Source of the DNA: Mytilus californianus
Lineage: Eukaryota
Direction of reading: 5' to 3'
DNA: 64,000 nt
NCBI RefSeq assembly: GCF_021869535.1
Contig: NW_026262581.1
Coordinates: 111,848,001 to 111,912,000, forward strand
Part shown: positions 22,401-60,880 of the stretch, piece by piece
Layout of the letters: each line of letters opens with the position of its first letter
Numbering within the stretch: position 1 is the first letter of the stretch
Made by a program: the position numbers and the translations under genes
Notes under the pieces: generated by a model
Database searches by the model: none
Seen by the model: the letters and a program-made list of their open reading frames with translations, nothing else
What the model was told of the DNA's origin: nothing

Positions 22401-25400
22401 TCGTCTTCTGTTGGCATTTCTATTTTCTGTAGCCCATGTGTTTGGCAATATGGTGTGTGGTCTGTTAACAATGTTTCTTTGGTAAATCCATGTAAACAGT
22501 AGGGACAGTAAAAATATCTTCTTTTATGACTATGCTGGTCACCTAATAATCTATTCAAATCCTTAATCCAACAAGAGTGAGATTTTTTTGCCATCTGATA
22601 TCAATAACAGATTTACTTTTTGCTCATATCGAGTCTTTGTCACATGCAATGGCATTAGTTCTTTCTTTTCGTATCAAAAAAAATTGATAGAAACTTTGTT
22701 TTGAGTTTCAAATTTTGGTATATCAGCCAATTTCATAGGAAAATTTATGTTTTGAAACTTCAAATGAGATGCTTTGTCTGTATAATTTGAGATACGTTTA
22801 GCTCCTTAATCTACCGACCGTATGGGTTCCCAATTTTGTTATTTATATGTATATAAGATATCTTATATAAAAAATATTTATAAGATATCTAAGATATCGT
22901 ATATACTTTATAAGATATCTTATATACTTTATTAAGATATCTAAGATATCGTATATACTTTATAAGATATCTAAGATATCGTATATACTTTATAAGATAT
23001 CTAAGATATCGTATATACTTTATTAGATATCTTATAAAATTTAAAAGATATCTTCTAAAGTAAATGAGATATCTTATAAACTTTATAAGATATCTTATAA
23101 AACTTGATTATATAAGATATCTGATATATTATATGAGATATCTTGAATTTGGAATAAATATTAAAACGGCTTGCCTTAGAAATCACTATATAATATTCAT
23201 TATACTGAATTTAAATTGTAGCAAATGCGAAAGTCCGATGGCCTATGTAACTTATGTGGCAATTTTTTTGAAACCAAGAGCATCTATTCTATCATTGTTA
23301 TAAAATTCAAAACGTCATTGAAGAAATAAAAAGATTGATATCAATGTGCATAGATATAACGCTTAACTTTGATGTCCAAAACACGATTATTGGATATAAT
23401 CAAGATCTTGATAAAACGCAAATAAATATTGGAAATTTGATAGTGTTTTCGGGAAGATCTAGTATTTGGAAAGATTGGAACGACATTAAATTCAACAAAA
23501 CAGTATTTAATACATTTTCATCCTCCGTATTTCTAAGAAAGATATGAATGATTTTATCAAAATGATCGCTAAATCAAACAAAAAGAACTTATTCGGAATA
23601 GACAAACTTGACCGTTTATCTCAAATATTGTAATCACTATTAATAGTCGAATTTGCTTAATTAATTATCACTTGTTTATTCTTTATGCAGATATATATAT
23701 ATATATATATATGTTTAATTTCTACTTTCTTTTTGGCTAATTATTATATATTTAATTGATCCAACTTTTTGTGTACTATACATATGTGGATATCTATTTT
23801 TCTTTTTTTCTTTTTGGGCTGCTTGTTTGTTATCTATATCAACCACACTTGCAATAAAATGCATTAGTATTAAAAAAAACAACATACTATAGATTCTTTA
23901 TCTACGTATTCTTTAAGAACTTAAATAGTTCTCGTTTAACTTTTCTTTTTTTTATCTCATTGTTTGTATTGTATTATGAAAAATTATTGATGTTGTAATG
24001 TTTATGCCCTTTGGGGCCCATNNNNNNNNNNNNNNNNNNNNNNNNNNNNNNNNNNNNNNNNNNNNNNNNNNNNNNNNNNNNNNNNNNNNNNNNNNNNNNN
24101 NNNNNNNNNNNNNNNNNNNNNNNNNNNNNNNNNNNNNNNNNNNNNNNNNNNNNNNNNNNGTCTCAGTATTATAGTTAATTATATTTATCATCTGAATACA
24201 AAACGCACACTTTGAACTAGTATATTGTTTACACCTTCATTTACAAACAATCGCTATTATTTATATAAGTTAATTTTATAGTTTATATTTAATACATATT
24301 TATATTACATACTTTTTTGTACTAGTATTTTACTCACCACAGACTGTGTTTCTTCATAAGTGCACATACATTTATTTCACAAATAATCCTGCATCGAAAA
24401 TCCTGACCCTGTAACCCCTAGGTGTGTTACACGACAAGAAAAACCTTAACATATGCATTATCTGACTTTTATATTTACCGTCAAAAATATTATGTTTTGC
24501 AAAGCATGGACAAATCTACAGTCTGGCAAAGTATAAGAAAATTCTAAAGTGAAAATATATTTTACACAGTGGGCATGGCGGCATATCGGGTTTCATAAGG
24601 ATTTTAACCATAAACTTATTAAAGATTTTAGGCTTATAATTTCATACTCCTGGTATGTTTTTCGGTAGCATTACAAACACTAGCAGGCAATTTATAGATA
24701 TTTTATTATACGTGTTTAATATTCAGTTAACAAACTCACTACCACATATAAACCCAAGACAAATCCTGCTCTAGTACGCATTTGCAATTTTAAAAAATAC
24801 ATCATATATGGCGGTGTTTTCTTTCTTTTTTCTTATTACAATCATGAACAAAAGAGTCATTAAGTATGATCATATATAATGTTTACAAGTGTATATTTTC
24901 ATTGAAATATTATATAACTGGCATCAAAAACACCAATATGAAAAAACAAGGCGACAAGAAATATTTGTGTTGGCTTGATTTATATTACTGACCACAGGCG
25001 TTTGGTGCTTAAGGGGGTTAACCTTTTTTTGTAAATATTTGTTTTTTTCTTAAAACTTATTTTCACTTTTTTATGTGTTTTTGCTCTTATCCATACGATA
25101 TTACAACAACAATAGGTATAAATTTTGCCCCTCTATTCTTGTTATTGTTATATCGTTTGGATAAAAGTAAGAACACGTTAAATAAGTGAAAATCAGTTTT
25201 AAAAGATAAAAAATATTTACTAAAAGAAATTAAACTATACAAAAAAGGAAAAGATATCCGGGGTCCATGTAACTGATGACCTAATTTAGATAAGTGATGT
25301 CCTAGCCGACGCGTGATATCTCTGATTCTGAGCAGATGAGTCATTAAATCCATATTTTTGGTTGAAGTTTTTTACTTTATAAAAATTCCAGTTGTTATAT

Positions 25401-28400: not shown

Positions 28401-31400
28401 TTAGCCAACACGGTTCACCGTTACAGGTGTGAACAACATTTCGTATGAATGATAAAAACATTAATTATTTGGGGAGGAATATGGTGGCAAAATACCTGAA
28501 TCGCCGTTATATACATGTATATCTTTTGTATTTTGCGTAAGCTTAATTTTAAAATAGATAGGTGAGTATTTTGTTGTAACATCGAAATTCTGAATTACTT
28601 TCAATTAAATAATTTTACAAATAAAAATGGCCCACGAAAACGAGCGTATAAACCAAACACTGTACTTACTTTTTCAAATTATCATGGGTATTAACCGTGA
28701 AAATTTCAATGTTTAGAGAAAATTATCGCGGTTACATGATTAATATAGGTTGGTCCGTCCACAGCGATCTACATTTACCTAATCGGGAATGCCCTTATTA
28801 AAATATTTAAAATCCCACAACGTATACATACTTTAGCTATTTGACCAACGATGTTTAAAAAAAATAACAGAATCAATCTAACGTCAACTTTCCATTTTTG
28901 AATGGAGACAGACCGGAGGAATCAATTTTCAATGTGCTTTATATCTTGTACCTTTGCAACACTTATCATTCATTCATAAACCCACTTTATACCAGAGACA
29001 TATATGTCAGTCTTAACTGACAAGAATACACCTAAAGCGGACAAGCAGTATTTTCTTTAAGCTTCTGTGATTTAATACCAAGAAAGAAAAAAATCCCGAA
29101 ATTAATTTGATACTTTGATACTCAATATTTTTCCTGGAATATATTCATATCCTCGTTTGGTCTGAAAATAAGATAAGAATTTGGTATACAGAACATGCAG
29201 AAGTGTGAATGTCATAAAACCTTGTTATATCAGAAACCATTATAAATGTGAACCTGTATACGTAAGACCTCATGGGACGTCACCTAACCACATACAGGTA
29301 ATATACAAGTAGCTCTGTTATACCCGGAAATGTCAAGGTAAATCACTACCGATACAGAATGTACCAATGCAAAGAAAATTCTGATGATTGTGAAGCATGA
29401 CCATTCATGATTTTAGAGGAGTCTTAGGTGGAAATTGCCGGTACGATTTAAATTCTGACTATATTTTTTTCTCTCAATTTAAATCACTGAACTTAAAAAA
29501 AAAAGAATCAGAATTCTTCATGTAAATCTGAGACTACTATATTTTCTCTTATATTACTCTCATTTAATATTTTATGCATAAGTGCAATATTAGGAATGGT
29601 TTATCCCCCCTCCCTTTTAAGCTAACTAAATAAATTAATCAACCTTCTAGCTGACCAGACGTTAACACATCTACTATCAGTCAATTCGGAGTGAAGTTTC
29701 TTTATTTCTTCAAATAAGCTTTTTGGGGATCATTAGTGTACGTCCAGTGGCATATATATTACATGCATGTCGGAACAGGAAAATTGACATGAGGTATAAT
29801 AGAACCATGTTCACATTATTACATTATTATATATAATACACAACCATTGAGATGATGACGACTTTCTTAAACTGTTCAAAATAATCTTATGGAAATAAAA
29901 ATCTGTGATTTTACTATGTGCATAACTTTGATGAACCNNNNNNNNNNNNNNNNNNNNNNNNNNNNNNNNNNNNNNNNNNNNNNNNNNNNNNNNNNNNNNN
30001 NNNNNNNNNNNNNNNNNNNNNNNNNNNNNNNNNNNNNNNNNNNNNNNNNNNNNNNNNNNNNNNNNNNNNNNNNNNNNNNNNNNNNNNNNNNNATTTGATC
30101 AAACAATATATATATATACAACAATTCATAATAAAAACAGAGATCAAATATCCAGCCTTAGAACAGACTTATGAGACACTTAGATATCGACCTGTATTTA
30201 AACTGAGACTACTATAACACAGTAGTCTCAGATTTGAATCAGATTGGTTTTGGATGTTTCTCTCGTATATTCAATATACATGTATATATTCTAAATTGCG
30301 ACTATCTATAGTTCCGTAACCTTCTATCTAGGCGTATAATCCAATGATCGACAAGTGCGTACATTTTGTTAAATCAATATTTGTACGTTTCAAAATGTCC
30401 ATAATTATTGACAACGAGTAATTACTTACATTTTCCCCAATTTACGTTTGGAAAATATGTAAATATATTTTTATTTTATCAAATCTTTTTTTGGAATTAT
30501 TTAGATTTTCATAAATGTTCTTTACACCATAAATGTTATTTATAAACAAGCGTATGAGTTTAGTCATATATACAATGGCTATTATATCTATGGTTTAGTA
30601 AAGACTAGCATATCACTATCGGACACGCAAGCCAAAGATGTATATTCACCTGATAGTTTCAAAATGGAAAGTTACAAGTTATCGGCCGTGTACACTTCTC
30701 AATACCCTCAGAGGTGAAGTGATGCACGAACTTGCTTTATGTAATTGTGTAATAAGAGTTTTAAAGCCCGACAAGAAATCGCTTGAATACCTGGACGTGT
30801 CAACTCACAATACCTCTGGGAACAATTCCTTTAGCAATGCTGGTGATCAGATAAGGGAAGGTCCGAATTTATTTAAATAAGATTATTACATAAATTAATT
30901 ATGAACACACTAGATTTTCGAAAACATTTTTACACGGAACACTTAATTTATCACTTTGAACTTTTTAACTAATTTCCATTAACATTTCTTGTTTCAAAAA
31001 CTTAGTAAAAAAAACAGTTTCAAAACGACAGACCATAGTACTAGTTATGCAAAAAAAATTATATATAATTACATTTTCCGTATCAAGTTAGTTAGGAAAG
31101 GTTGCATGCACAACCATGTCTATTATAATCTTTTTTTGTGACCTGGGAAACTGTTTAGGCTTTCCTTGTCGGGTAAAACAACCGTACGCTTGACAAGATA
31201 TCGACACTCAATTACGGCTACGTTAGGTTACTGCTTGTTTTGGTCCTTTGTGGTTTATAGATATATCGTGGTTTCTATTCAGGGATGATGTCAAAATGGC
31301 CGCACGCGGAGAAGTGATACTCTAAATTTAAAATCGATGGTGATCTCTTATCTAGCAGAATTAAACTTTAATATTTATGAGTTTGTGGTTTTTTATACAT

Positions 31401-37400: not shown

Positions 37401-40400
37401 GTTGTGTAGCAACACTCTAGCAGCGCCTGCATTAGAAGTATATATCTCCCAGTTTATACGATATTCCCTTGAAAAATGTTGCTGCTTATAAGGAGTCATT
37501 GAACCAGGGTTTCCTAGTAGTGACATTGAAGTCATCTCTCCGACAGTTTTACAGACCCCATCATGATTTGATTGATCTTCATGGAATATATGTGTCACAT
37601 ACTAAAACGAATATGTTCCGATTATAATAACCACACTCTCGAATTCTTTTCTTCGCGGAATGAAACTTATTACCGAATTTCTACTTGCCATGTGCAACAC
37701 GACGTCTGTCACAAGTGGAGCAGTATCTTGATTTTACTCGTGATTTCCTGGTTTCAACATACACATTTAATTGTAAGAAATAAACGTTTCCTTTTAAGTT
37801 TATTGGAATGTAACGTGAAATGTTGATAGTGTTTTTTAGAAATTCAGTGCTTCATACAAAGCTTTTACATCCAATAAAGTAACGGGGGGAAAAAAGAAAC
37901 CAATTCTAAAATACAGAAGATGCATTTACCTGTATCAAAAAGGATGCAAGTGCTAGACATTATCAAATAATATTACAATAAGGGTTATTCCAGAGAAACA
38001 TGTCGCACTGATATCGGCATTAAATGATTATAATATCAGGTGAGCGGTATTTATTTATTACTTAGTATATTGTTGTTATTGTTATATAAAGATGATAAAA
38101 AATAAATCAAAAGAATACAATGAATAGCCTTTCATGCATTAGTTTTACGTTTAAGGGTAAAACAATGGGGAAAGGCGAGAGGTTTCCCCCATACGCCTGA
38201 ACAGTTACTTGCCAAATATACTGCAGCTAAATTAGGCTATAATAATAGCCATTTAAGTATTACAAAGAAAAGAAGCCTCTAAATGAGAACATGATTGTGA
38301 TTTAAATGTAAAATTAACTTGTTTCTATATTTTAAAAATAAAGACAACAGAAACTATAACAGGTGCTGTATTTAATGAGTTTATATGCATCAGTATTAGG
38401 CATAATCTGATTGAGAATATGTTTTTTATTGCAATTTATTATCATTACTAATTTTCATGTTAATCTATGCGTAAGTATCGACAGTACTTGGTGAAATTTA
38501 TCTCAAAATCACGTGTAGTGTGCATCAATTTAGTTTTAGTATTTGTTTATAATGCATTATCCGACAAAATCAGGTGAAAGTGCGATTTACGATCGTTGTA
38601 AACCAACACATTACTGTTAGAAAATGATATACATGGCAGATAAAGGATCTTCAAAAGAGAACCGGAACATTTAGCCTATAAGGATATCATTCAATAATCA
38701 GTACTTAAAACACAAATTATCGACTATAATGGGTTAGGGGCTTGGGCCACCTTGATTTGATCCTCCACAAGATCACAAGATACTAATTGCTATATTAACT
38801 AGTTTATAATTGGAATATAATAATTCTTATTAATAATGGTACATTTTTCTCATCAATTGTTTCCTATTTTATTTCAATAAGACTTCCTACATCATGACTA
38901 AAATTCAGTTATAACTGTTTCATCAAACGAACATCTAGAAACTGAATACTGTCTTAAAACTTGCATAAATCTGACTATAAGTGTTACACAATCATAATGT
39001 TAATCAAATTTATTTGCAGATCAACCTATAACTTGTAACGATGGATACTTCCCCTGTCGAGACAACAAAGAATGCTACCACAATGCCTCCAGATGCGATA
39101 ATGAGTTCAACTGTATTGATCGGTCAGATGAAATACACTGTCCACGTAAGAAAATATTTCTCGTCATTTTCTGTATTTCTATTTCTAAATTATTATATAT
39201 CTCACATTTCTGTGCTTGAAAATCGTCATTTTACTTTCGTTGTTTACTCAAATTCAGTTAATTCAAGATTTTACAATAAAAAGCGAGACTTCATTTTCTC
39301 CATACCGCAAAACTGCAAATAATGTATATTTATTTGTTTGCTACTCCAGCTGTCAACTATTGTCCAGAAGGTTCTTACAAGTGTGGCAATGGTAGATGTG
39401 CAGTAAAATCAGAAGACTGTCGACAGGCATCCTATAGTGAATTATCAACCAACATTATCAGTCCTTCAACAGCTTACAGTATCAATCCTCAAAAAACCAA
39501 AACTATCGATTCTACAACTTCCCAAAGTGTCAATCTTGAAACAATGTTAAGTTTTCATCCAACAACGGTTAAGCATTTCGAAGTCCAAACTTCTCACACA
39601 ACTTATCTAACAAATGCCGAGATAAGAACAAGCAGTTGGGGTACAAATATGCAAAGTGGCACACATAGAACCCCAAATCATAGCGATAGGACTTCTACCC
39701 AAGGTAATGTCATTTTTCATACCACAAACATAAAACTCCGAGCGTTATCGTGACACATGTTATCTAAAAAATCTTAAAATCAACAAGATATAAACAGGAA
39801 ATTATTTATCAACTTCTCCATTGCTATTGTCTTGTTGTCCCCTGGGCAACATGTTGCATGAGAAATATCGGGCGTCCGTCCGTCCGTCTGGTTTGGTTAG
39901 CGCTCTCACGTGTACAATTCTTGCCAGATTTTTATGAAACTTATATCATAGGTTTATATGAGCAATGTCTTGGATGAGTTCGAAAATCAGTGCCGATCAA
40001 TTATTTTTAAAAGAGTTATGCCCCTTGGAAACATTAATTGTATTGAAAATAGCATCGTTAGCGCTCTCATTTGTACAATTCTTGCCAGATTTTTATGAAA
40101 CTTATATCATAGGTTTATATTAGCAATGTCTTGGACGAGTTTGAGTTCATATTTCCGATATTAAGAGGAAAACATTTACAACTTGTTTTCATCGAAAACT
40201 TTGGTGTAATATTACTAATGAAGAATTGTGATTGACAACAGCATTTGGGTTACATCAAATTATACCACAGCATATTTCATACGTTTTATCATGCACTTAA
40301 CAAAGGTAACCAAAGAAATTTTTATAACCATTCTCTGCTGAAGTCGAAGGAGTCTGCTTATAAAAATTAAGCAGCAGAAAAATAAGAGACTAAGTAAAGC

Positions 40401-43400
40401 ATTTTAATATTTTGAAATCTATGTCAGCTACTATTTGTTTTCTTATGAATGGAAAAGTTATATCAAATTCAGAATGACGCCTCATTTGTTTTAGGAATTT
40501 TTCGTACCACAAGACATACGCCGATAACTTACACCTTTCCAATTAGGGGAAACGACCGTCGCGGATTACATACAACAGCTAGAACTACTGTTCAGTCTCC
40601 AGAGCTTCCATCTAATCCTAACAAACTATCGTCGTCAAAAATACCATTGTATTCAACATCTAGAAGTGAAGTTCAGTCCTTTAAAAGCTTAAAAACTCAG
40701 ACTATATTATCATCATCACTGTCACAAAACGTGTTGTCTTCCACAGGGACGAATTCGAGAAATATTCATCCAACTTCATCAATTACATTTCTGCCAACAA
40801 ATATTGCAGTTTTGTCTTTAGATCAGCCAATATTTTCATCAACACAAAATGTACCATCGGGTGAAACTTACATGGAAATTAAAAGAAATTCTCTTTTAGA
40901 GTCATCAACTTCATCAATTTTATTTGGCTCTCCTTTATCTTCGTCAGCCAATTCACATTTTCAACTGCTTCTATTTGATAGTTCTAGTTCAAATGCCGAT
41001 GCATCTTTAAGGACTGAAAATGAGGCACTAACTTTACTGAATGCAGCGTCTCAGAAAACTGTAATTTCAACCACTTCTGGTCAAAATTCAAATCAAACAG
41101 TTAGTCTAAGCAGCATACAAACAGATAACTGGAATTACTCGATATCTGTCGATAGTTCACTATTTTCGGAATCAGCAGAGCGGAAGGATGTATCTGACCC
41201 AATAACACCAACAGTTCGTGCACGTAAATACCAGTCTCGCATATCCAATGGAGACAATGTACATTATCAAACAAAAGACAGCATGTATCAGTTATCCAGT
41301 GCTACATACGCATCATCGGTTATGAATCATTTGACGTACGAAGAGAATGTAGTTTTTTCTGAAAATAAAATTCATACAGAGAGGCACTTTCCATTGCCTT
41401 CGATTTCTTCAGAAAAGACTTTGTCGCTTGCCAAATTGCAGTCATCGTTTTCTTCTCGGATTTCACATTTTTCTACAACATTAACAAAACCTAGTTTATT
41501 TGTACAAAAAAGAAGCAGTTCAACTATCAGAGAAAGTTCATTGGACTCTGTTTGGAATAATACAACTACAGTTAACTCGACTACCCCGCGTGCAAAAAGT
41601 ATATTTGTAGAAAATCTTGGACTATTTATCATTATCATAGTTATAAGTGTAGTATGTATTGTATGTGTTATTTGTGGTTATATCTGTATACGACGGAAAG
41701 TACAGTCAAGAAGTTGGACATGCCGACAAGAGGAGTATTATACGAAAGTATGTATTTATATATTAATTTTTAATCTTTTACTGATATCATATATATATAT
41801 ATTTACCTGTCTAGTAACCGCTCGACTCCGTCCGTCCGAAAGAAAGAAAGCTTTCGTCAAAGTTTGTTTGGCTTCTTTATAAGGGAACGATTTAATATTT
41901 GGTCTGCAGCTTGACAATGTTCAGTTGTAGCTAATAAGCAATTTTTACATCCGTCATGAAACTGCTTCCTGTTTGCCGATACTTTTTACAACACTCATTG
42001 CACAAGGAAAATTTTGGTCAAAGTTTTCATGGCTTCTCTGATAGGGGAATGGTTTAATATTTGGTCTGCACCTTGATAATGTTCAGTAAAAGCGAATAGG
42101 CAACTTTTTTACATCCGACGTGCATTCGCTTGCTGTTTGCCGATAATTTGAAATTTTATAACTCTCATTGTTCAATGAAAATTTTCGTTAAACTTTTCAT
42201 GGCTCTTACTGAAGGGAATGCTTTGATATTTGGTCTGCAGCTTGATAGTTTTAAGTTGTAACGAGTAAGCAATTTTTACATCCGCCATTTAGCCACTTCC
42301 TGTTTGGTGATAGTTATATATTTTATAATACCCATTGTACAAGAAAACTTTTTGTCAAAGTTTTCTTGGCTTCAGTAAAAGGGAATGGCCAGTTATGCTC
42401 CAGTATATATGTAACCTCAATCAACTGCACGCAGAGACGCAGGTGCAGACCCGGTATATGTTTTGTCAAGTGGTTGTCTTTGATTGCAGTCTGTCATATT
42501 TGTTTTTTTATACGACCGCAATTTTTTTTGCGTTCGTATTATGTTATGGCGTTATGTCTGCGTCTGCGTCTGAAGACATTTTGGTTTCGCAGACAATAAC
42601 TTGAGTGTAAGTGTATGGATCTCTATGAAATTTTAGAACAAGTTTCCATACCACTAAAGGATGGTTGGGATTGTTTTTGGGGTAATTGCCTTAGCGGTTT
42701 TGTAATTAGGGGTAAAAAAGGTCAGTTTTACTGGTTCATAGAAAATAAAATTGGTTAACAGACAATAACTTAAGTATAAGAGTATGGATCTGTATGAAAT
42801 TTTAGCACAAGATTCCATACCACAATAGTAGGGTTTGGATTGATTTTTGGAGTTAATGTAGTAGCTGTTATGTAATAAGGGAACAGAAAGGGGCCAAAAC
42901 AATTATTTGGCTGGTTCATGGAGAAAAACTTGAGTATAAGTGTATATATATATCTATTAAATTTTAGCACAAGTTTCCACACCACAACAGAAAAGTTGGG
43001 ATTAATTCTTGGGGTTATTGTTATAGCTGTTTAGGAATCAGGGGCCCAAAAGGGACTAACAAAAACAATTATTTGTCTGGTTCACAGACAATAACTTGAG
43101 TATAAGTGTATAGATCTGTATTAAATTTTACCACAACAGGAAGGTTTGGATTTATTTTGGGGATTATAGTCGTAGCTGTTTAGTAATTAGGGGCCAAAAA
43201 CAAGCATTTTTCATGTTTCAGGACAATAATTTGTGTAGAAAAGTATAGATTTCTTTGAAATTTTACCACAAGGTTCCATACCTCCAAAGGAAAGTTTTGA
43301 TTGATTTTTGGGGGGGGTCATAACCTAAACCGTTTAATAATTAATTCCAACCATGTTTTAGAATTTGGATATTGGACCATAACTGGTAAATGTCCAATTT

Positions 43401-48437: not shown

Positions 48438-48879
48438 AAATTGTGAGAATAGTGAAATTGGGAATGTGTAGATGAAAATTACATAATTCCATGAACTATA
48501 ATAGATCTCTGACAAATGTTTTAGCCATAAAAAAAACTGATGTCTCAGGAGTGTTTTCTTCAAAAATATTATATACTGAAGTATAGTGTTTGTCTCGCCA
48601 GACTTTTTGTTCTAAACGTAATCCTTTTTGAGTGTTTAATAGATTTTTTTTATAAGTATACTGTATTTTCATGTATGTTTGGATATTATAAGACATTGAA
48701 CAAAATAATGAATATATTGTTAGAAGATTTTTTTTTAATGATAAGCCATATCTAAAAAAAACTTTTTTTGACAAGAGTTATATTTTGCTTGCGAAATGAG
48801 CAAAACACATTACATAAGGATAACACAATCATAATTTTGTGTTCAATTTATTTTAATTATTTTAGAATAAGGCTGTTGT

Positions 48880-49062
48880 TCATCGTGTATAGTATGGATC
48901 CTTGCCATCACAGCATTTTTTAAAGCCTCCTCCTTTGCCGATATACCAATCACACTCGTAACCTATTCCTTTATGGTATTTATATCCATAATATTTTCTT
49001 TGGCATGTTGCATAATTGAAGTAACAATGCTTTGGCTTCTTAGGATTCATCTGGCATTTTTC
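48880..49062 (-). CDS. TIMP: TIMP exon 5 (C-terminal domain, Tyr/Lys/Gly-rich)
   Basis: ttttctag|EKCQMNPKKPKHCYFNYATCQRKYYGYKYHKGIGYECDWYIGKGGGFKKCCDGKDPYYTR*; AATAAA on the minus strand at 48847-48852. Confidence 0.85.
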   Translation of the reverse strand, partial: EKCQMNPKKPKHCYFNYATCQRKYYGYKYHKGIGYECDWYIGKGGGFKKCCDGKDPYYTR

Positions 49063-52000
49063 CTAGAAAAAATGAAATTATAATGAAGCATCTATATAAT
49101 CTGACTGCACTTTCGTGCTTCTAGCTACTACCTTTTTTAATTAGATTAAACCAAACATGTCTATAAAAACGGGTATTAAGACTTTTAGTTCAATTGAGTA
49201 AAAATCAAGATAATATCATAAATATGTGTAAATACTTTAGCATGAACAGATTATTATTGAAAGTCTATTCAAAATGGACATACCATACACCCAGACTGTT
49301 GTCTATATCTGTATTTCATTGCATTATGTTGGTGTGGTGTCACTTTTGTCCATTTCTTATTAAATCCACATTTATTGATCCAGTAGTCATTACCAATCAT
49401 GGTGCCTAATCGCAAAAATAGAAAGATTTCAACGGGTCATTTCAATTCTACCATACAAAATGAACAGTGTAGTTGATCGGAGTGTGATAAATAAAAACCG
49501 GAGTCTGTTATCATTCTTTGTAGTAAGTATACAATAACTACCCATTTATTTTTATTTCTTGAGCCGATATTGATCGTCGTTTTTAATACTTACATTTAAA
49601 TGAAAAATAGAAGAGTGCTGTGAAAAGATTGCTTATAAAAGGTTGTCCTCCGTTTGCGGTAAAACTATATTTGAGTAGAGGGACTGTATCCAATATTAAA
49701 TCTTGTCGTCGGGATAGGGGTTTCATACTACGAAAACATGTTAATTTAACGTTTCCCCCCGACTTAACGTTTACAGCGTACATAAGTTCATTCATAACTG
49801 CATATAGGTTGTAGCTTTTATCGAAATTGATGAAGTTTGTTTTTGGGGCACAAGTGAAGAACATAGTGTTATTGTCTTTCTTTTCAAACAATACTTGTTT
49901 GATTTGGTACTGAATATTTACTAAGAAAAAATATATATAACCGAAAGGTAAAGAATAGCAGTTGTGGTGTCAATAATATACATACCACATAGAAGATAAG
50001 TTTGTCCTACTTTTAAGTTCATACCACAATAACTGGTACATCCCTTTGACAAAATTTGCATGGTTGTATTCTTTTCACATGGGCCCTGTTTCAAAATGAA
50101 AAGCAAAAGCATGAATTTACTTGAAATAGAGAGGCGAAAGATACCAAAAGGACATTTAAACTCATTGAACTATCGTTGTCTCAAAAAGAGGTATGTTGAA
50201 TTTCCGTATAATTTGTTTCACTCATGGAGTCATAATTCGAATGTTAATGAAAACTGTTTAGATTTGAATGTAAAATATAAGCATCAACAGTATTAAATAT
50301 ACCAATAATTGAATAAAACAAAACGTTATTAAGCGTTGAATTAGGAAGCTGCTTACAAGGAAGCTATTGAACCAAGGTTTTTAAATATAAACTTGAAGTC
50401 ATTCAATCCAAATTTTCACGAACGTCGTCATAAATTTTTAGACTACAATCTCTATATTTCGGATGACAATGGATATGTTTCATTGTCACCAGAATCCTGT
50501 CCTCTTGTCTCTATTGTGACATCACCGAGTTTGACTTATCACCGTATTTTTACTTGCTAACAGCAGCACGACGTAATCCACTAGTGGAGCAGGAACCGAT
50601 TACCGTCGGAAGCACCCGAGTTCACCACCGATTTTTGATTGGGTTCTTCTTGCTAAATCTTTAGTTTCCTTTGTAAACATTTGTAGCTTTTTGACTGTCT
50701 TTTCGTCGTTTTGCTTTTGGCTATGCTGTTTGTCTTCGACTTGTGGGTTTTTATTAACCCCCTTGGTATCTTCTGTTCTTTGAACTATATATATTACCAA
50801 AATGGATTAGGTTTAATCTACCATTTTCTACATAAGGAAATGCCTGTACCAAGTCAGGAATATGACAGTTGTTTTCCAATCGTTTGATGTGTTTGAGCTT
50901 TTTTTTTGCACTTTCCGTTTTGAATTTTCCTTGGAGTTCGGTATTTTTGTTATTTTTCTTTTTTACTTTATACAATAAGGTGCTGTGGTATGATTTCCAA
51001 TGAAACAACTATCCACTAGAGACCAAATGATGTAAATTTTAGTAAATGTTCGTACAAAACAACAAACGGAAAACAAAAATGATATACAGCAAGAAACGAC
51101 AAACATTTAATTACAGACTCCTGACTTGCATGAGACCATGTATAGCGTTACTTCCGATATGTTTTTTGTTTCGGTTAACAATGCCCCATTTATATATTTT
51201 GGAGATAATTTGATATTTACATGTAGTTCCATGTTCAAATACATCACAACCTCTTAGTAAACACTTGTAGCTTCCATGCTGTTAATTTAAGTAATGATTG
51301 GAGACCTTTTTTAAACTAGTGTGGAATAAATTTAGGGGAATTCATCTACCATATGAAATAAAAGGCTTATGTTTTGAATTGATTCCCAAAAACTTATTAT
51401 CAGTCACAAACTTTTTTGTACAGTGAAATGTGTCGGTCGTTCTTTTAAATATTTCAAAATGATCTATTCTCCAAACAAATAGCTCATACAGTTACAGGAT
51501 ATTGTCCTTATCATTTATTAGTATATGTCACGAGAGTTCTTTTCGGCGTTCTATTTTTTTTTTTTTTTTTTTTTATTTTTATTGATAATACACAAAATGG
51601 ATCATGAACAGGAATTACCAAAACTTTGGGACATCACAGCAGAGAACATCAGCCATCAACACCTAACTCAAAAAGGATAAAAAAAGACGCAAAAACAGGA
51701 AAAAACAAACAATGAACAACACATAGTCCAGGTAACTTGACTTCGCACAGGCACAAAATGAGGTGAGTTGAAAGCAGTTAGGTACAACCCCTCCATTTCT
51801 CGAAAATTTGCAAATCTATTTTTGTTCAGCTGAATTTCAGACGTTGTTTTAGAAAAGTGTACAACGATACCAAAATTAACTAAAATAAATATTAGAAAAA
51901 AACCCACAAATATCAGCAAATAATTCGGAAAACAAATATCTTTCATCAGTATGTACTGATTGATGCAAAATGGCCCGTTTGTTATAATCGTCCAAAACAG

Positions 52001-52815
52001 CCCCCCGTTCGAAAGATTTCTTGGAATTATATAAATAATCAGCTTTAAATCCTAGAAATTTTTACTTTTAATTTCCTAGATTACTTGGATTAAATATTTT
52101 TTCAGCAACAAATGTAACCTCTGTGTGAAAGACACTTATATATTATAGAAATATCGAAACCAAAACATCAAAAGAAGAATATTGAATAAACCAATATATT
52201 TCAATCGTACAGACCATCAGAAAAATGTTGCCATCGTGCCAAGTTTAAAGTTTAAGGTCCTTACCTTCAGCACTTTTTTGACATACACGCTGTATTTGTT
52301 GTCATGCCTTTTATTTTCCAAATCTTTACCATGAGGTGCATCATCAATCCACACTTGTTTCTTCACTTTAACAGTTCCTTTGATGCCTATATAAATATAA
52401 ACGTAAATAAAATGTAATAAAACATAGTGTTTGAAAATAATGAATATACGCGGTTAATAAGTCACGAAATAGTTCTATGCACTCAAAAAGGCGAAGATGA
52501 CATCGAACTAGTTCGACCTATTGTTTAGTTTTATTTCAATCTATCGTCTTAATTCATTTATTTCCTCGTTTTTGCCTCATTTTATCATTTTTTTTAAACC
52601 AGCTGTTCTGTTTAATTCTTGTTTGGAATATTGTTTTCGGTTTCTTTTGGATAAAGAGCGTACCAAGTAAGCTCTATACAATAGATTTACTACTTACAAA
52701 AGTCTGAAAAGTCAAATAACGTCATTGGATGGTATGGTCCTGGGCATACACACTTGGTTTTCCCGGCTGATGCAGCCGTAAAACCAACAGCCATTAATGT
52801 CAAAAGCTGCAACAT
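48880..52815 (-). CDS. TIMP: Atypical TIMP (metalloproteinase-inhibitor-like), 214 aa; complement(join(48880..49062,49284..49405,49986..50085,52265..52386,52698..52815))
   Basis: Signal MLQLLTLMAVGFTAASA, CVC..HP..F.FSDF.IKG, YSVYVKKVLKG, YCGMNLKVGQTYLLCG, KC.F..KW..VT..Q...MKYRY...GC, C-terminal C..W; GT-AG junctions with phases 1,0,1,0. Confidence 0.9.
49284..49405 (-). CDS. TIMP: TIMP exon 4
   Basis: attag|GTMIGNDYWINKCGFNKKWTKVTPHQHNAMKYRYRQQSGCM|gtatgt. Confidence 0.9.
49986..50085 (-). CDS. TIMP: TIMP exon 3
   Basis: aaacag|GPCEKNTTMQILSKGCTSYCGMNLKVGQTYLLC|gtatgt. Confidence 0.9.
50790..50965 (+). mobile_element. Short fragment of the PLE 3' tail (family A; also 17430-17542 and 52925-53070)
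   Basis: aaatgcctgtaccaagtcaggaatatgacagttg..ggagttc(g/a)gtatttt is identical in type to 32280-32432. Confidence 0.8.
52265..52386 (-). CDS. TIMP: TIMP exon 2
   Basis: tatag|CIKGTVKVKKQVWIDDAPHGKDLENKRHDNKYSVYVKKVLK|gtaagg. Confidence 0.9.
52698..52815 (-). CDS. TIMP: TIMP first coding exon (signal peptide and N-terminus)
   Basis: gtacag|agtc ATG: MLQLLTLMAVGFTAASAGKTKCVCPGPYHPMTLFDFSDF|gtaagt; the acceptor implies an upstream non-coding exon. Confidence 0.9.
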
Positions 52816-55800
52816 GACTCTGTACAAAAAAGAAAATCTAAAATAGTGCCTTCTTCATTCGTGAAAAATACCTTCTTGAACTATAAAAATAGTTAATAAT
52901 AAAAATTAATTGTATAACGATATGAAAGAAAATGCCTGTACCAAGTCAGGAATATGACAGTTGTTGTCCATTCGTTTGATGTGTTTTGTCATTTGATTTT
53001 GCCATGTGATTAGGGAATTTCCGATTGAATTTTCCTCGGAGTTCAGTATTTTTGTGATTTTACTTTTTTCTCAATACAGAGGTGAAATGTTTTATGGTTT
53101 CTATTTAACCTGGACATCAATTTTCAGTTTGCTTGGTCTCATGTATGTTTGATTGATATATGAATATGAAATCACATGAAAACATATTACTTTGAATTAC
53201 AGACTACATTTCTGGCTATTGGTATTTCAGATGCAATAGTTGAGCTAGATCAAATTCTGCTTTTTTTATTCTTTTTCTTTCTTTTCCCCAAGAAGAAAGG
53301 TTATCGTTTGATAATTTGGTTTATATGGTCTTACCTTATGCTAGCTGATCTTCGTCTGAATTTAGTAAATTATGAATTAACTTTTCCTTTTTATACGGGT
53401 GTCTTCCATAAACATGACATATTGAGAACATAACGTCATTAGCACACATGTTTCTAATTAGAAAATAATGTCAATATACCACTAAAAAGTGAAAAACTCC
53501 TCCCAAAAACTAATTCATTCACACTCCTTTCAAGACATTATCATTTGCAAAAGGTGAACAAACTACTTAACGCGTTTAAAATCTATTCCTTTTTGAATTT
53601 GTGAAAAGGTTGACTTGTAGTTTATGGTAACGTATGCCTCAAATGATAATTTTCCAGTCAATTAGGTACCAGTCATAAGGCTGTAATTTAAACATTATTA
53701 ATGTTGATGAAATTGAAAAAGTGCGAATAGATCAAAGAAAGGGAGAAAAAATGTTCTGAGATGAGGGATCGTTTCACAAACAGGAAAGAACTGTAAAGTC
53801 TACAGATTTATGCAACGATACTGTTAAGATACAATAAAAAAATCATGAAATCGTATCGTATCGAAAGACAAAACAAAGATAAAACTTTTCCTTTAAAAAT
53901 GATATATAACTTCTCATAACACGTATGTAAACGTTTGAGGCCTTAAAAACCAAATTGGTCCAAACAACAACCCGAAAATATCTATGTGAGATACAATCCT
54001 ATCTTTTTAACGTATTCACATAACTTTATAAACTAGAAATTAACTAGCAAAATGTATCATTTACATGATGCCATTACCGAAATACTGGCTATACTGGGAG
54101 GCTGTTTCCCTTGATGATTGATAGTCCACGGGTAGTGGTACCGACCAAGTTGTGGGGAAAAATTATATCAAGTTTTGGTTTTTACAGTGGTAAAGGCTTA
54201 GTTGATGTCCTAGTGAATACTTTGTAAGAACATTTACAGTACGTATATCGAAGAATATATCTTTATCACTAAAAGAAAGTGTAGAAGAAAAATAGTTAAC
54301 CCGTCGAACCTTACAAAGAAAAAGGAAATCTAGACAATCCAGATAGTTTTCCTTCCGTTAAAAGTCAATCTATACTATTATACTGTTTTCATTTGTTTTC
54401 GTTTGGAATTTTGCCTAAGAAGAAGAAATGAAGTGTACTTAATTCAATTGCATATCCATAATTCAATATTCATTATAAATAGTTATATATATTAGTCTTG
54501 GAAAAATTATATATTCATTTAAAAACAAACTGCTTTGAACTAGCTTTTAGTAAATGTGAGTGCTCTTAGGTCTGCACTTTTTGCCTTTGTCTTTTTTAAA
54601 GTTTATGTGATTAGTGTCGATCTGATGTCAAACTCTTACTAACTGATTTTTACAGTTTGCTCTTGTATTGGGCTATTACACCACTATCTCAGGTTTGGAT
54701 TGGTAACTGCCACTCATAAACATTAAAAACCCCTGCAACATCATTTATAGGACAGTCCTGTGTCTGGAGTCTGTTATCAAGTGATTGTCCTTGATTCATT
54801 TCTGTCACTATCAAGTTCCGGCTTATTGTTTAGTAAAAGTGAGGTAGTTGGTTTTCTCTTTTGAATTGTTTCACATTTTGTCATTCCGGGGCGTTTCATA
54901 GCTTTTTTATATCTATACGGTATGAGTTTTTGGTCATTATTGAAGGCCGTATAGTGTGTAACTAGTTCACATCCTCATCCTTTGGACTTTGGTGGATAGT
55001 TGTCTCATTGGTAATCATACCACATTTCAATATTTTTACATTTATATTGCTCCATTTGTCAATCGCTCACGCAAATTCTTTTCGAAGTAGTTGCATGAAA
55101 TTTAGGTTCAAATTTAACTACTCGTAATGGTAAGGTGAATCAGATTTGCACTATGAAGATCCACCATTAAAAAGGGCAAACGTGATCAATGAGCCTTTCT
55201 TCTTCTTGCCCATGGAAAAAAAACGACGAAAAGACAAACAATAGTCACAAGACACTACACAGCACAGAAAGAAAACTAAAAAAATGAACAACACAAAACC
55301 CACTAATGGCACCCGTCTTGTTGTTCACGGTTAGTATTCGATTATTACACAATCGAGGAAAAGAGGAAAGGATTATGGCTACGATGAAAGGAGCATCAAT
55401 TCGTTGTAATCCGTGACACTAATATTCCATACTTAAAGATTTACAGTTTCTAACCGCTAAATGAGTTTTCGTGATTGAATATTCTGTGTTTTACGCAAAT
55501 TTTCTAAAAGGAATATTCTTGCTGTATTGACCTGGCCGTCTTTGGTATTTAAGTCAGCGTAAATAACTCTGACCCGAATTTGCCACAAATGAGGATTGAC
55601 TCATCTAGCGTTTTAAACCTAACTAAGTACTGCTATGACTATGAAAATAAAAATAACAATCTCGTAAATCAGATGTCTGAGAGAACATGGTAAAGTTATA
55701 AGTTGTGTTTGGCTTTGAAGTATTTGCGAGTACTCTTTGATTGGTCAAGCCATTTCAAACAGGTTTTTACAATTTGTTTGTATGTTGTTTTGTTACACTT

Positions 55801-60305: not shown

Positions 60306-60880
60306 TCAGAATGTTAGTGTCTCTGTATAAGCCTCTGTGAGATAATTTTTTGGTACCAATCCAAATTTACCATTTAATTCACCTACCCACCATGAGCGGT
60401 CATCAAAATCTCTATTTATAATATAAATAATATCACCCTTTTTAAAGGACAGCTCTTTATCATTATCCCCAGTACAATCCCATTTCCCAATATACATATT
60501 TTCAAAGTCATCCTTATTTCTGTAAGACTTTAGTTCCTCCTCCTCAACTGGTGGTGGAGGTGGGGGAAGTTCTTCTGTCTTTTTATATGGCTCCCTTATA
60601 GGTGGAAGTGGTCTGGATTGGTAAGGATCCTCATCAGGAACGGGTGGCGGCGGAGGACGTGCAATTCGAGGTGGAGGTACAGATGGCACAGAAGGAGTTG
60701 ATGCATCTTCATACAACTCATCTTGTATTGGGGCAGATGCTCCCTCATCATAAATATCTTCTTGTATAGGTTTTGGTGGATAAGCTACTGGTTCTGCTTC
60801 ATAAATATCTCCTTCTGTTCCATCATCATAAAGTTCTTGTGACTCATGTGCATCGTCTCCAACAGGCTCATATATATCAC
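60306..60880 (-). CDS. SKAP2: SKAP2-like last coding exon
   Basis: ttcattttag|GDIYEPVG...SH3...TETLTF*; 575 nt open. Confidence 0.9.

Follow-up and report, generated by a model that had tools for sequence, protein, structure and literature searches.

A transcribed six-exon gene on the minus strand

The window, a 64,000-nucleotide stretch of Mytilus californianus DNA, contains on its minus strand a gene of six exons, five of them coding, whose 214-aa product is read with no internal stop. The gene comprises the following features.

53388..53395, minus strand: TATA box (TATAAAAA) of the gene's promoter
53335..53362, minus strand: exon 0, 5′UTR; 3′ end at 53335, followed by GTAAGA
52815..52698, 52386..52265, 50085..49986, 49405..49284 and 49062..48880, minus strand: coding parts of exons 1 to 5
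52698..52819, minus strand: exon 1; 4 nt of 5′UTR, then ATG at 52815; encodes signal peptide residues 1–17, ending A-S-A
52764..52753, minus strand: GKTK, in exon 1
52752..52744, minus strand: CVC, directly after GKTK in exon 1
52713..52711, minus strand: Asp35, in the position of Cys13, following HPM in exon 1
52265..52386, minus strand: exon 2; rest of Cys40 and N-domain strand A/B, Lys-rich
49986..50085, minus strand: exon 3; new Cys83, Cys96 and Cys113, and canonical Cys100 (TIMP-2 Cys72)
49284..49405, minus strand: exon 4; canonical Cys126 (TIMP-2 Cys101), Ser151 replacing TIMP-2 Cys126, and Cys153 (TIMP-2 Cys128)
48880..49062, minus strand: exon 5; residues 155–214 and TGA stop; C-domain Cys157, 167, 174 and 191, with a conserved C-x-W-Y motif
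48955..49002, minus strand: residues 175–190 (QRKYYGYKYHKGIGYE), between the last two canonical cysteines
48883..48951, minus strand: 23-residue C-terminal extension past Cys191, with GKGGG, vicinal Cys204-Cys205 (48915..48910) and PYY
48835..48879, minus strand: 3′UTR; AATAAA at 48852..48847; the RNA contig ends at 48835

All four coding introns have GT..AG ends, and in RNA run X1 one spliced contig (714 nt, depth 78) bridges every coding intron, differing from the window at three positions, all synonymous. The open coding sequence and this contig, which confirms every junction, bear out the original prediction of an intact 214-aa gene, while the predicted span, 48880–52815, proved too short: the 5′UTR exon ends at 53335, and the polyA signal lies at 48852..48847. 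Exon 0 was recognised from 18 loose letters of the X1 contig that exactly match 53337–53354, and its 5′ end is approximate, with RNA extending to at least 53354. The exon ends in ...CATAAG (...CATGAG in M. coruscus), so that an upstream ATG (MRVM...) is absent from the M. californianus genome. The block 53265–53600 shares 97.3% identity with M. coruscus, compared with about 91% for the introns. The Mytilus gene is intact, TATA-driven, spliced, transcribed and single-copy, and its product is a secreted, strongly cationic 23-kDa protein (net +22, pI 9.4).

Membership of the TIMP family

Profile, structure and gene-architecture comparisons place the protein in the TIMP family, with a predicted two-domain fold (an OB-type NTR N-domain followed by a C-domain). 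Specifically, the Pfam TIMP profile (PF00965) scores 63.6 bits against a cut-off of 23.1 on P0001, the 97%-identical M. coruscus ortholog, aligning residues 24–187 with profile positions 2–169 of 183; exon 4 is the sole single exon that matches the profile (20 bits, E 6.6e-4). Sequence matches to PDB entries of TIMP-2/3 reach E values of about 1e-7. The AF2 model, built from a 24-sequence alignment (pLDDT 76.7, pTM 0.71), finds as its best Foldseek matches full-length TIMP-2 (about 197 columns, E 2e-10) and TIMP-1, with a TM (target) of 0.68. Furthermore, exon 1 ends in phase 1 within the Cys40 codon, a position and phase shared with 12 paralog first exons, exon 4 ends just past the CxC position as in the paralogs, and the five coding exons match the molluscan TIMP norm of five exons. 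Profile match, model and gene structure are thus those of a TIMP, whereas no mature chain beginning at Cys1 is predicted and the canonical set of twelve cysteines is incomplete.

A conserved predicted stub in front of Cys1

The (−3,−1) rule was the sole guide to signal cleavage. The permitted signal-peptidase sites nearest Cys1 are ASA↓GKTK and SAGKT↓K, with xSA↓RKTK in M. edulis and M. galloprovincialis, and in the five orthologs no compatible site exposes Cys1; 1–4 residues stay in front of it, most consistently (G/R)KTK. The rule is consistent with the mature start predicted originally, GKTK ahead of the C-X-C motif. In the alignment with 20 other TIMPs, xKTK before Cys1 is exclusive to the Mytilus clade; KTK is invariant among the orthologs, whereas the signal peptide is variable. 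A small residue stands immediately before Cys1 in 10 of the 12 paralog first exons of the M. californianus genome and in 18 of the 20 other aligned TIMPs, the exceptions being a ...CKD↓CSC group and one ...YC↓CSC protein. The inhibitory tip of the Mytilus TIMP is, on these comparisons, probably capped.

The premise that an N-terminal extension abolishes TIMP inhibition agrees with published N-TIMP-3 data for MMPs, where 3–5 additional N-terminal residues abolish inhibition (Ki above 1 μM); inhibition of ADAM/ADAMTS enzymes is weakened, by ~100-fold or more (ADAM17/ADAMTS Ki 88–843 nM) (PMC3003256).

An altered cysteine set

The original counts of 15 Cys, and of 31 Lys and 18 Tyr after ASA, are exact. 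The cysteines are residues 22, 24, 40, 83, 96, 100, 113, 126, 153, 157, 167, 174, 191, 204 and 205, and the canonical columns kept are 22, 24, 100, 126, 153, 157, 167, 174 and 191. HPQxxFC is indeed replaced by HPMTLFD, with Asp35 in the place of Cys13; the reported loss of Cys13 stands, with the correction that a new cysteine, Cys40, lies five residues downstream and spans the exon 1/2 junction. The canonical partner of Cys13, TIMP-2 Cys126, is missing too, with Ser151 in its column, and Cys3 is followed by a one-residue insertion.

Relative to the 12-Cys Mytilus paralogs, two cysteines are lost, four are gained in the N-domain and one more is gained, giving 15, and the total is odd because of the vicinal Cys204-Cys205 in the C-terminal extension. 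This bookkeeping suggests one unpaired C-terminal thiol as a candidate, and two new N-domain disulfides, Cys40/113 and Cys83/96, are proposed from the sequence. The M. edulis RefSeq ortholog, with Arg at Cys96 and therefore an even 14 Cys, counts against a role in cross-linking. The Cys1-Cys72 and Cys3-Cys101 disulfides, which give the inhibitory wedge its shape, are fully conserved together with the C-x-C-P edge; this also fits a kept binding function and likewise counts against cross-linking.

The C-terminal part and overall composition

The last 60 aa contain 10 Tyr, 11 Lys and 8 Gly, exactly as first counted (17% Tyr, 18% Lys, 13% Gly; 10% Cys). In within-protein comparisons, the description of this part as Tyr/Lys/Gly-rich holds for Tyr (Fisher P = 0.03) but not for Lys (P = 0.53) or Gly (P = 0.32), and Lys/Arg-Tyr adjacency is not above chance (8 observed versus 6.6 expected from composition, P = 0.34). 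Instead of an adhesive-like tail, the model points to the folded second half of a TIMP C-domain with a 10-residue hairpin insertion and a 23-residue extension. In particular, the roughly 10-residue Tyr/Lys/Gly insertion within residues 175–190 is missing from all 20 other aligned TIMPs, and the model puts it at the tip of the last beta-hairpin. Searched as a profile against 1.84 billion representatives, the tail retrieved only its own clade and one unrelated sushi-domain protein, and no mussel foot protein. The TIMP C-domain homology, the predicted strands and the lack of an mfp match speak against a tail resembling mfp-3/5/6.

Across the whole protein, Lys makes up 15–16% and Tyr 9–10% in the Mytilus clade, compared with 5.5–11.5% and 2.4–5.8% in the 20 other TIMPs, about twice the family norm. 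The clade has a net charge of +20 to +22 and a pI of 9.35–9.44; Lys content and net charge are the highest among 24 TIMPs, and pI is among the highest, with two paralogs reaching 9.45 and 9.58. On these sequence comparisons, the xKTK, Lys and Tyr features exceed chance.

Expression and evolution

Run X1, the sole run with the transcript, is also strong in the foot marker mfp-1 (share 0.60). Five further runs of this species that are positive for mfp-1 (X25–X28 and X29, the last with an mfp-1 share of 0.32) lack the transcript, as do the genome project's raw-read RNA run and at least eight more RNA runs of the species, some of them belonging to the same study. A structural protein abundant in byssus would be expected in each foot sample, and this counts against a byssal role; with the transcript in one of six mfp-1-positive runs, that role is no more than a candidate. 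Neither a literature search nor the supplementary data of a byssus proteome study on M. galloprovincialis yielded a match to its accessions or peptides.

The orthologs from four other Mytilus species share 92–97% identity with the M. californianus protein. The stem branch of the clade measures 2.18 substitutions per site, compared with tips of 0.02 or less, and mature-protein dN/dS is 0.05 versus M. coruscus and 0.066 versus M. galloprovincialis, the C part being most constrained (0.035) and the N-domain at 0.075. These values suggest a burst of change followed by strong purifying selection (omega 0.05–0.07).

A probably capped TIMP as a candidate matrix cross-linker

We favour, tentatively and at a little under an even chance, a capped, probably non-inhibitory TIMP that acts as a cationic matrix cross-linker in the manner of Sbp8-1. 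The protein would be secreted with (G/R)KTK still in front of Cys1, and the retained stub would thereby make the Zn-chelating alpha-amino group of the TIMP wedge unavailable. The Cys13-Cys126 disulfide, the brace of the N-terminal segment, would have been swapped for two new N-domain disulfides, and the capped wedge and swapped disulfides would together turn the TIMP scaffold into a rigid carrier for three added features: a surface rich in Lys, a last C-domain hairpin lengthened by a stretch rich in Tyr, Lys and Gly, and an extended C-terminus in which the vicinal Cys-Cys would leave one thiol unpaired. Anchoring to an anionic matrix would be electrostatic, a covalent bond could form through the free thiol, either as an intermolecular disulfide or as cysteinyl-DOPA, and Tyr may be oxidised. 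The material is most likely byssus or foot secretion, and possibly periostracum or shell framework. Of the original proposal that a TIMP was co-opted as a structural or cross-linking byssus/shell protein, the family assignment, the capped start and the Sbp8-1 parallel are retained, while the mfp-like tail is not.

That the protein is a latent or still-active metalloproteinase inhibitor appears unlikely. In the latent form, (G/R)KTK would be a pro-segment, either cut after Lys21 by a Lys-specific endoprotease or trimmed by an aminopeptidase or dipeptidyl-peptidase; in the active form, the stub would shift selectivity from MMPs to ADAM, ADAMTS or astacin-type enzymes. In such an inhibitor the cationic surface would serve as a matrix tether, as in TIMP-3. 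Consistent with inhibition, Cys1-Cys72, Cys3-Cys101, C-x-C-P and the connector before Cys100 are invariant at an N-domain dN/dS of 0.075, the invariant KTK places a basic residue right before Cys1, a TATA promoter with sporadic expression suits an inducible regulator, and [-1A] and [-2A]N-TIMP-3 lose MMPs yet keep nM inhibition of ADAMTS-4/5 and ADAM17 (PMC3003256). However, N-TIMP-3 with extensions of three or more residues, or with Lys at −1, shows only 0.2–0.8 μM Ki (PMC3003256), KTK↓C is neither a dibasic nor a furin-type site, and the missing Cys13-Cys126 brace, the change of HPQ to HPM and the one-residue insertion after Cys3 also speak against inhibition, which leaves the Tyr insertion and the odd cysteine unexplained. 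Its zymogen-like version, a pro-TIMP in which the KTK stub silences a matrix-bound inhibitor until a Lys-specific protease or exopeptidase exposes Cys22, is a long shot; inhibition would be switched on locally, for example in byssus/shell-matrix maturation or wound repair. For the latent pro-TIMP raised as an alternative originally, the one pertinent observation is the invariance of KTK. We know of no precedent for a pro-TIMP, and this counts against a latent inhibitor.

Slightly less likely than the inhibitor reading as a whole is an inducible defence or wound-repair factor resembling oyster Cg-TIMP, a cationic protein secreted by haemocytes or epithelium under injury, infection or at a particular life stage, with the mfp-1 co-occurrence in X1 incidental. 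A depth of 78 in one run and none in the genome project's raw-read RNA run or at least eight others would fit such a factor, as would the high net positive charge and the roles in immunity and wound healing reported for bivalve TIMPs (PMC10755359), but a single copy under strong purifying selection (omega 0.05–0.07) is unlike typical fast-evolving immune effectors, and the capped N-terminus is left unexplained. An interfacial byssal plaque adhesive, with a DOPA-modified Tyr/Lys/Gly C-terminal part acting like mfp-3, mfp-5 or mfp-6, would be the co-option proposed originally in its strongest version and is improbable: the composition of the last 60 aa recalls mfp-6 (11 mol% Cys, as cited in the Sbp8-1 paper, PMC5975577) and mfp-1 accompanies the transcript in X1, but the segment is locked by disulfides and folded in the predicted model (strands 175–182 and 191–198, P0001 numbering), has TIMP C-domain homology (Pfam match to profile position 169 of 183), retrieves no foot protein in the tail profile search and pairs Lys with Tyr at chance level, and the transcript is missing from five of the six mfp-1-positive runs.

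Significance

In pteriomorph bivalves, TIMP expansion and co-option into byssus and shell are already known, and, to our knowledge, Sbp8-1 is the only non-inhibitory bivalve member of the family to have been characterised. The Mytilus-wide gene offers a clearer molecular route from inhibitor to another role, the marks of which are a conserved, probable N-terminal cap, the coordinated loss of an ancestral disulfide and proposed gain of others, a hairpin-tip insertion and a candidate surplus C-terminal thiol, apparently fixed during a burst of change and kept nearly constant since (omega about 0.05). If the preferred cross-linker reading is true, mussel-inspired materials could draw on the protein as a compact, folded, disulfide-stabilised scaffold bearing thiol, Tyr and Lys chemistry; a latent inhibitor would represent a new level of TIMP regulation and the first natural TIMP controlled by N-terminal unmasking.

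Comparison with known TIMP-family systems

Vertebrate TIMP-2 and TIMP-3 (PDB 1BR9, 2E2D, 3CKI) are the best sequence and fold matches of the Mytilus protein, at 22–25% identity, and share with it the C-x-C start, the Cys1-Cys72 and Cys3-Cys101 equivalents, C-x-W-Y at the last canonical cysteine, and five coding exons. Unlike them, the Mytilus protein has an N-terminal stub and HPM for HPQ with a one-residue insertion, and lacks Cys13-Cys126. TIMP-2 Cys138 has no equivalent, a C-terminal cysteine probably substituting for it as in other Mytilus TIMPs, and the tail is basic and Cys-bearing, whereas that of TIMP-2 is acidic.

A byssal metalloproteinase inhibitor-like protein of M. coruscus (P0019) is reported to take its name from the byssus proteome described by Qin et al. 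2016. It has genus, TIMP family and basic pI (9.45) in common with the Mytilus protein studied here, but is only 27% identical, lies in another clade of the tree, and combines a canonical ...VHA↓CSC N-terminus and 12 Cys with unremarkable contents of Lys (7.1%) and Tyr (3.3%); given this identity, clade, N-terminus and cysteine set, the studied gene is not the known byssal TIMP-like protein. Tensilin, a TIMP-like factor that stiffens collagen fibrils in sea-cucumber dermis, exemplifies a family member with a mechanical use in the matrix instead of inhibition, as proposed for the Mytilus protein, but is an echinoderm protein with another C-terminal region.

For the stub itself, the extended N-TIMP-3 mutants ([-1A] to [-8A], [-MK]) provide an experimental model (PMC3003256); their Ala stubs are engineered and the scaffold behind them is otherwise canonical, whereas in Mytilus (G/R)KTK is natural and conserved and the scaffold is also altered.

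Sbp8-1 of Chlamys farreri is, with Sbp7, an atypical scallop TIMP-like byssal protein with a full-length TIMP fold, like the Mytilus protein (PMC5975577). It is Lys-rich and basic, foot-specific and present in byssus, and its two extra C-terminal cysteines drive polymerisation in byssal thread and plaque (PMC5975577). The finding that Sbp8-1 is 'non-inhibitory' was made on an N-terminal Trx fusion (PMC5975577), and such a fusion would itself block a TIMP, which clouds the finding. Sbp8-1 keeps the 12 canonical cysteines and adds C164 and C186 (PMC5975577), whereas the Mytilus protein is without Cys13-Cys126, has gained four N-domain cysteines and a vicinal CC, and carries a 4-residue stub and a Tyr-rich hairpin insertion. 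The likeness is one of features, and the parallel originally drawn is real: extra C-terminal cysteines, high Lys and a basic pI are common to both, and the role proposed for Sbp8-1, a non-inhibitory cross-linker acting via free thiols (PMC5975577), is the one proposed here for the Mytilus protein.

Gene structure and transcript

The TIMP-like gene lies on the minus strand and encodes a secreted protein of 214 aa. Over 48700-53000 on that strand, one combination of GT/AG introns reproduces the 214 residues of the original prediction. One contig of 714 nt from RNA run X1 (depth 78) spans all four introns at exactly the modelled GT..AG sites; the gene model is settled, because RNA joins every predicted junction. 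The contig differs from the window at three positions, all synonymous, and its 18 upstream letters match 53337-53354 exactly.

Features of the TIMP-like gene (window positions)
53395-53388, minus strand: TATAAAAA, preceding the 5′UTR exon
53335, minus strand: 3′ end of the 5′UTR exon, ...CATAAG/GTAAGA, from the 18 upstream letters of the X1 contig
52815..52698, minus strand: CDS exon 1 of the 214-aa frame (GT/AG enumeration over 48700-53000)
52386..52265, minus strand: CDS exon 2
50085..49986, minus strand: CDS exon 3
49405..49284, minus strand: CDS exon 4
49062..48880, minus strand: CDS exon 5
48852-48847, minus strand: AATAAA; the X1 contig ends at 48835

Since the 5′UTR exon, the upstream box and AATAAA all lie outside the originally predicted span, the gene is complete and longer than that span. 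The same 5′UTR exon in Mytilus coruscus ends ...CATGAG (locus L015:10001) versus ...CATAAG here (53335-53340). The upstream ATG (MRVM...) of M. coruscus, M. trossulus and M. galloprovincialis is ATA in the window, so the orthologs start at MRVM... and the M. californianus protein starts three codons later; its signal peptide therefore begins three residues later, with an n-region that lacks its Arg. The promoter/5′UTR block 53265-53600 is 97.3% identical to M. coruscus, the introns of the gene being ~90–92% identical, and this difference suggests conserved regulatory DNA. Synteny is conserved as well, because a PH/SH3 gene neighbours the M. coruscus locus on the same side as in the window, where an exon at 60309-60716 (minus strand) encodes a proline-rich stretch and an SH3 domain (Pfam SH3_9, SH3_2 and SH3_1, E ~1e-11). 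The TIMP-like gene is single copy in the M. californianus genome, and a close tandem paralog was rejected on this ground.

Elsewhere in the window, two long plus-strand ORFs (39322-39753 and 40449-41882) have no Pfam match; one begins with a Cys pattern that looks LDL-receptor-class-A-like by eye, and the other is 477 aa, Ser/Thr-rich and mucin-like, with a hydrophobic segment at its end. Three adjacent minus-strand ORFs of 121–197 aa in different frames (20906-22448) look by eye like mobile-element polymerase remains; a Pfam scan of two of the three gave no match. Runs of N occupy 24022-24159 (138 bases) and 29938-30092 (155 bases).

A divergent clade of TIMPs

A search with exon 5 against 1.84 billion representatives returned P0001, the 217-aa M. 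coruscus ortholog (97% identical), which stood in for the spliced 214-aa protein in Pfam, PDB, AF2 and homolog searches. P0001 passes the Pfam TIMP cut-off of 23.1 with 63.6 bits (residues 24-187), and in the PDB it hits chains of TIMP-2 and TIMP-3 at ~1e-7; exon-by-exon Pfam and PDB searches were near-empty, exon 4 alone matching TIMP. Its 90% cluster holds the M. edulis, M. galloprovincialis and M. trossulus orthologs, none of them with an annotation beyond uncharacterised or NTR-domain protein. A word search from P0001 alone returned its own cluster only, and a second, to which an alignment with exon-1 fragments of paralogs contributed additional words, brought in 21 full-length TIMPs, comprising Mytilus paralogs, TIMP-2/4-like proteins of vertebrates and one cnidarian protein. 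Comparisons are based on a 24-row TIMP alignment and its statistics, with 20 sequences outside the clade formed by this protein and its Mytilus orthologs.

Five features of this alignment are found in the clade only. Specifically, xKTK precedes Cys1; Asp replaces Cys13 and Ser replaces the leading Cys of the C-x-C at the end of exon 4; extra Cys occur at 40, 83, 96 and 113; the interval between the final two canonical Cys is ~10 residues longer, the additions lying within QRKYYGYKYHKGIGYE; and a 23-residue extension bearing the vicinal Cys204-Cys205 follows the conserved C-x-W-Y. The loss of Cys13 that had been read from the sequence is thus borne out, with Asp35 at its position. The Cys replaced by Ser corresponds to TIMP-2 Cys126, the partner of Cys13, and Cys153 is the equivalent of Cys128, as confirmed by its 27-residue spacing from the Cys101 equivalent. 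Unlike the clade protein, P0019, named as a byssal metalloproteinase inhibitor-like protein of M. coruscus, has a canonical N-terminus, 12 Cys and an ordinary composition; it is a different paralog, 27% identical to the clade protein.

The mature protein is under strong constraint relative to M. coruscus (dS 0.12, dN 0.006, omega 0.05) and M. galloprovincialis (dS 0.38, dN 0.025, omega 0.066). By part, omega is lowest in the C part (0.035) and highest in the signal peptide (0.31). In the tree, the clade stem measures 2.18 substitutions per site and the tips ≤0.02, so that rapid change came first and near-stasis after it. The gene is spliced, transcribed and under constraint, and on these grounds we rejected the possibility that it is a pseudogene or an annotation artefact.

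The predicted N-terminal stub

The (−3,−1) rule of von Heijne describes permitted signal-peptidase sites. By this rule, none of five orthologs has a permitted site directly before Cys1 (residue 22), because Lys would hold both −1 and −3, and the only site common to all five is xSA/(G/R)KTK. The KTK is invariant among the orthologs, and the surrounding signal peptide varies. The rule therefore agrees with the original prediction of a mature N-terminus masked by GKTK before C-X-C. Among TIMP paralogs in this genome, 10 of 12 first exons place a small residue directly before C-S-C, followed by HPQ and Cys13, and four of 12, forming one cluster, read ...SYCKD/CSC. The first exons at 41.36-41.65 Mb of contig G000:C154 (L017, L019, L020 and L027) read ...SIQPSYCKD/CSC, and their cluster is probably a second group in the genome in which Cys1 is not N-terminal. 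P0023, an M. coruscus protein related to this cluster, has 9 Cys and is acidic.

In N-TIMP-3, a stub of one or two Ala eliminates the inhibition of MMPs, while that of ADAM17 and ADAMTS-4/5 is preserved; with three to five Ala, all Ki values climb to about 0.1–0.8 μM or beyond, and a Met-Lys stub gives 0.2–0.75 μM (PMC3003256). Because such extensions weaken or abolish inhibition, a four-residue stub ending in Lys should, by analogy, disable the canonical mechanism unless trimmed. A latent or re-targeted inhibitor, favoured by the preserved inhibition of ADAM-type enzymes and disfavoured by the effect of the longer extensions, is in our judgement unlikely.

Cysteines, composition and predicted fold

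Recounting confirms the originally reported figures: the chain after ASA contains 15 Cys, 31 Lys and 18 Tyr, and its last 60 aa contain 10 Tyr, 11 Lys and 8 Gly. Intron 1 interrupts a TGC codon, which places Cys40 five residues past the lost Cys13 position. Mytilus TIMP paralogs have 12 Cys, one near the C-terminus, and relative to these the M. californianus protein has minus two, plus four and plus one, giving 15; on this tally, one member of the Cys204-Cys205 pair is most probably the Cys left unpaired. Disulfides 40-113, 83-96, 153-191, 167-174 and 157-204 or 157-205 are proposed. In P0005, the M. edulis RefSeq ortholog, an Arg aligned to Cys96 leaves 14 Cys; it is an allele or an error, and would unpair Cys83.

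Lys content (15–16%), Tyr content (9–10%) and net charge (+20 to +22) in the clade each lie outside the ranges of the 20 other TIMPs. The C-terminal tail had been described as rich in Tyr, Lys and Gly; Tyr is indeed concentrated in the last 60 aa (P = 0.03), but Lys and Gly are spread over the whole protein, and Lys/Arg-Tyr neighbours are no commoner than in shuffled sequences. A 60-aa tail query of the representative library found no relatives outside the clade, which is weak evidence of absence because the query is short and the library collapses relatives above 50% identity.

AF2 with the 24-sequence alignment gives a model with pLDDT 76.7 and pTM 0.71 (N-domain mostly 84–95), which was used in preference to one from six near-identical orthologs alone (pLDDT 32). 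Foldseek matches the model best to full-length TIMP-2 and TIMP-1 (~197 aligned columns, E 2e-10), then to other NTR modules. In the model, the Tyr-rich stretch contributes both strands of the last hairpin as well as its tip, where confidence is lower. Because of this, the tail is predicted to be a folded TIMP C-domain with an insertion, and the proposed adhesive-like tail, a free chain of the mussel foot protein (mfp) kind, is not what the model contains.

Expression

Among the RNA runs checked, the TIMP-like exons are covered in X1 only; the raw-read RNA run of the genome project, the second run of the X1 study and a run of a third study show no exon coverage. RNA signal at 50698-51011 (intron 2) and 52896-53070 (just upstream of exon 1) is repeat-derived and not TIMP transcript: the two segments are copies of a short interspersed repeat whose coverage ranges from hundreds to tens of thousands across all RNA runs mapped, and many chimeric joints link the copies.

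The repeat exon of mfp-1 served as foot marker. A degenerate pattern of PKISYPPTYK, the M. californianus mfp-1 decapeptide repeat, has 22 in-register copies at one locus and 0 in a reversed control, which agrees with M. californianus as the species. This mfp-1 gene (G000:C99:70280295-70282124, minus strand, L029-L032) has at least 22 in-register units of the PKI(S/T)YPPTYK type and is useful for typing runs. X1 has 0.60 of the mfp-1 repeat-exon words, which shows only that this run, coded like all run and sample names, contains foot-type transcripts. The marker is also present in five more runs of the species, X25, X27 and X28 (one 2017 study), X26 (the X1 study) and X29, and none of the five was positive for the TIMP stretch, although complete presence of the transcript would correspond to ~0.18 of the words; small shares (0.05–0.07) in organism-B runs were not counted as expression. 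The gene is thus expressed in a sample with foot-type transcripts, yet foot tissue does not appear to make it constantly, because five mfp-1-positive runs lack it despite the expected share. An inducible defence or repair factor would be compatible with such sporadic expression, but we regard this reading as rather improbable. A true plaque adhesive, suggested by the Tyr content, is very unlikely, set beside the predicted folding of the tail and the five negative runs.

A proposed role for the TIMP scaffold in secreted material

Tentatively, we favour a reading in which the TIMP scaffold no longer serves as a canonical inhibitor. The scaffold would instead present an extra thiol and a Tyr/Lys loop at the surface of a cationic protein, and may cross-link or bind matrix in secreted material.

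The concept of TIMP co-option is already known (PMC10755359), and this gene, with its combination of changes, has no description in the searched literature. Searches by accessions and peptide strings gave no matches, the Mytilus and Perna byssus papers examined do not mention TIMP, and neither the supplements of PMC12607631 and PMC9957406 nor the M. californianus TIMP list of PMC10755359 (XP ids) holds an entry mappable to the gene. The inhibition assay of Sbp8-1, the atypical TIMP-like byssal protein of scallop, is weak evidence because an N-terminal fusion was used (PMC5975577). The cross-linking or matrix-binding role proposed for Sbp8-1 is the model that the Mytilus clade protein may follow.
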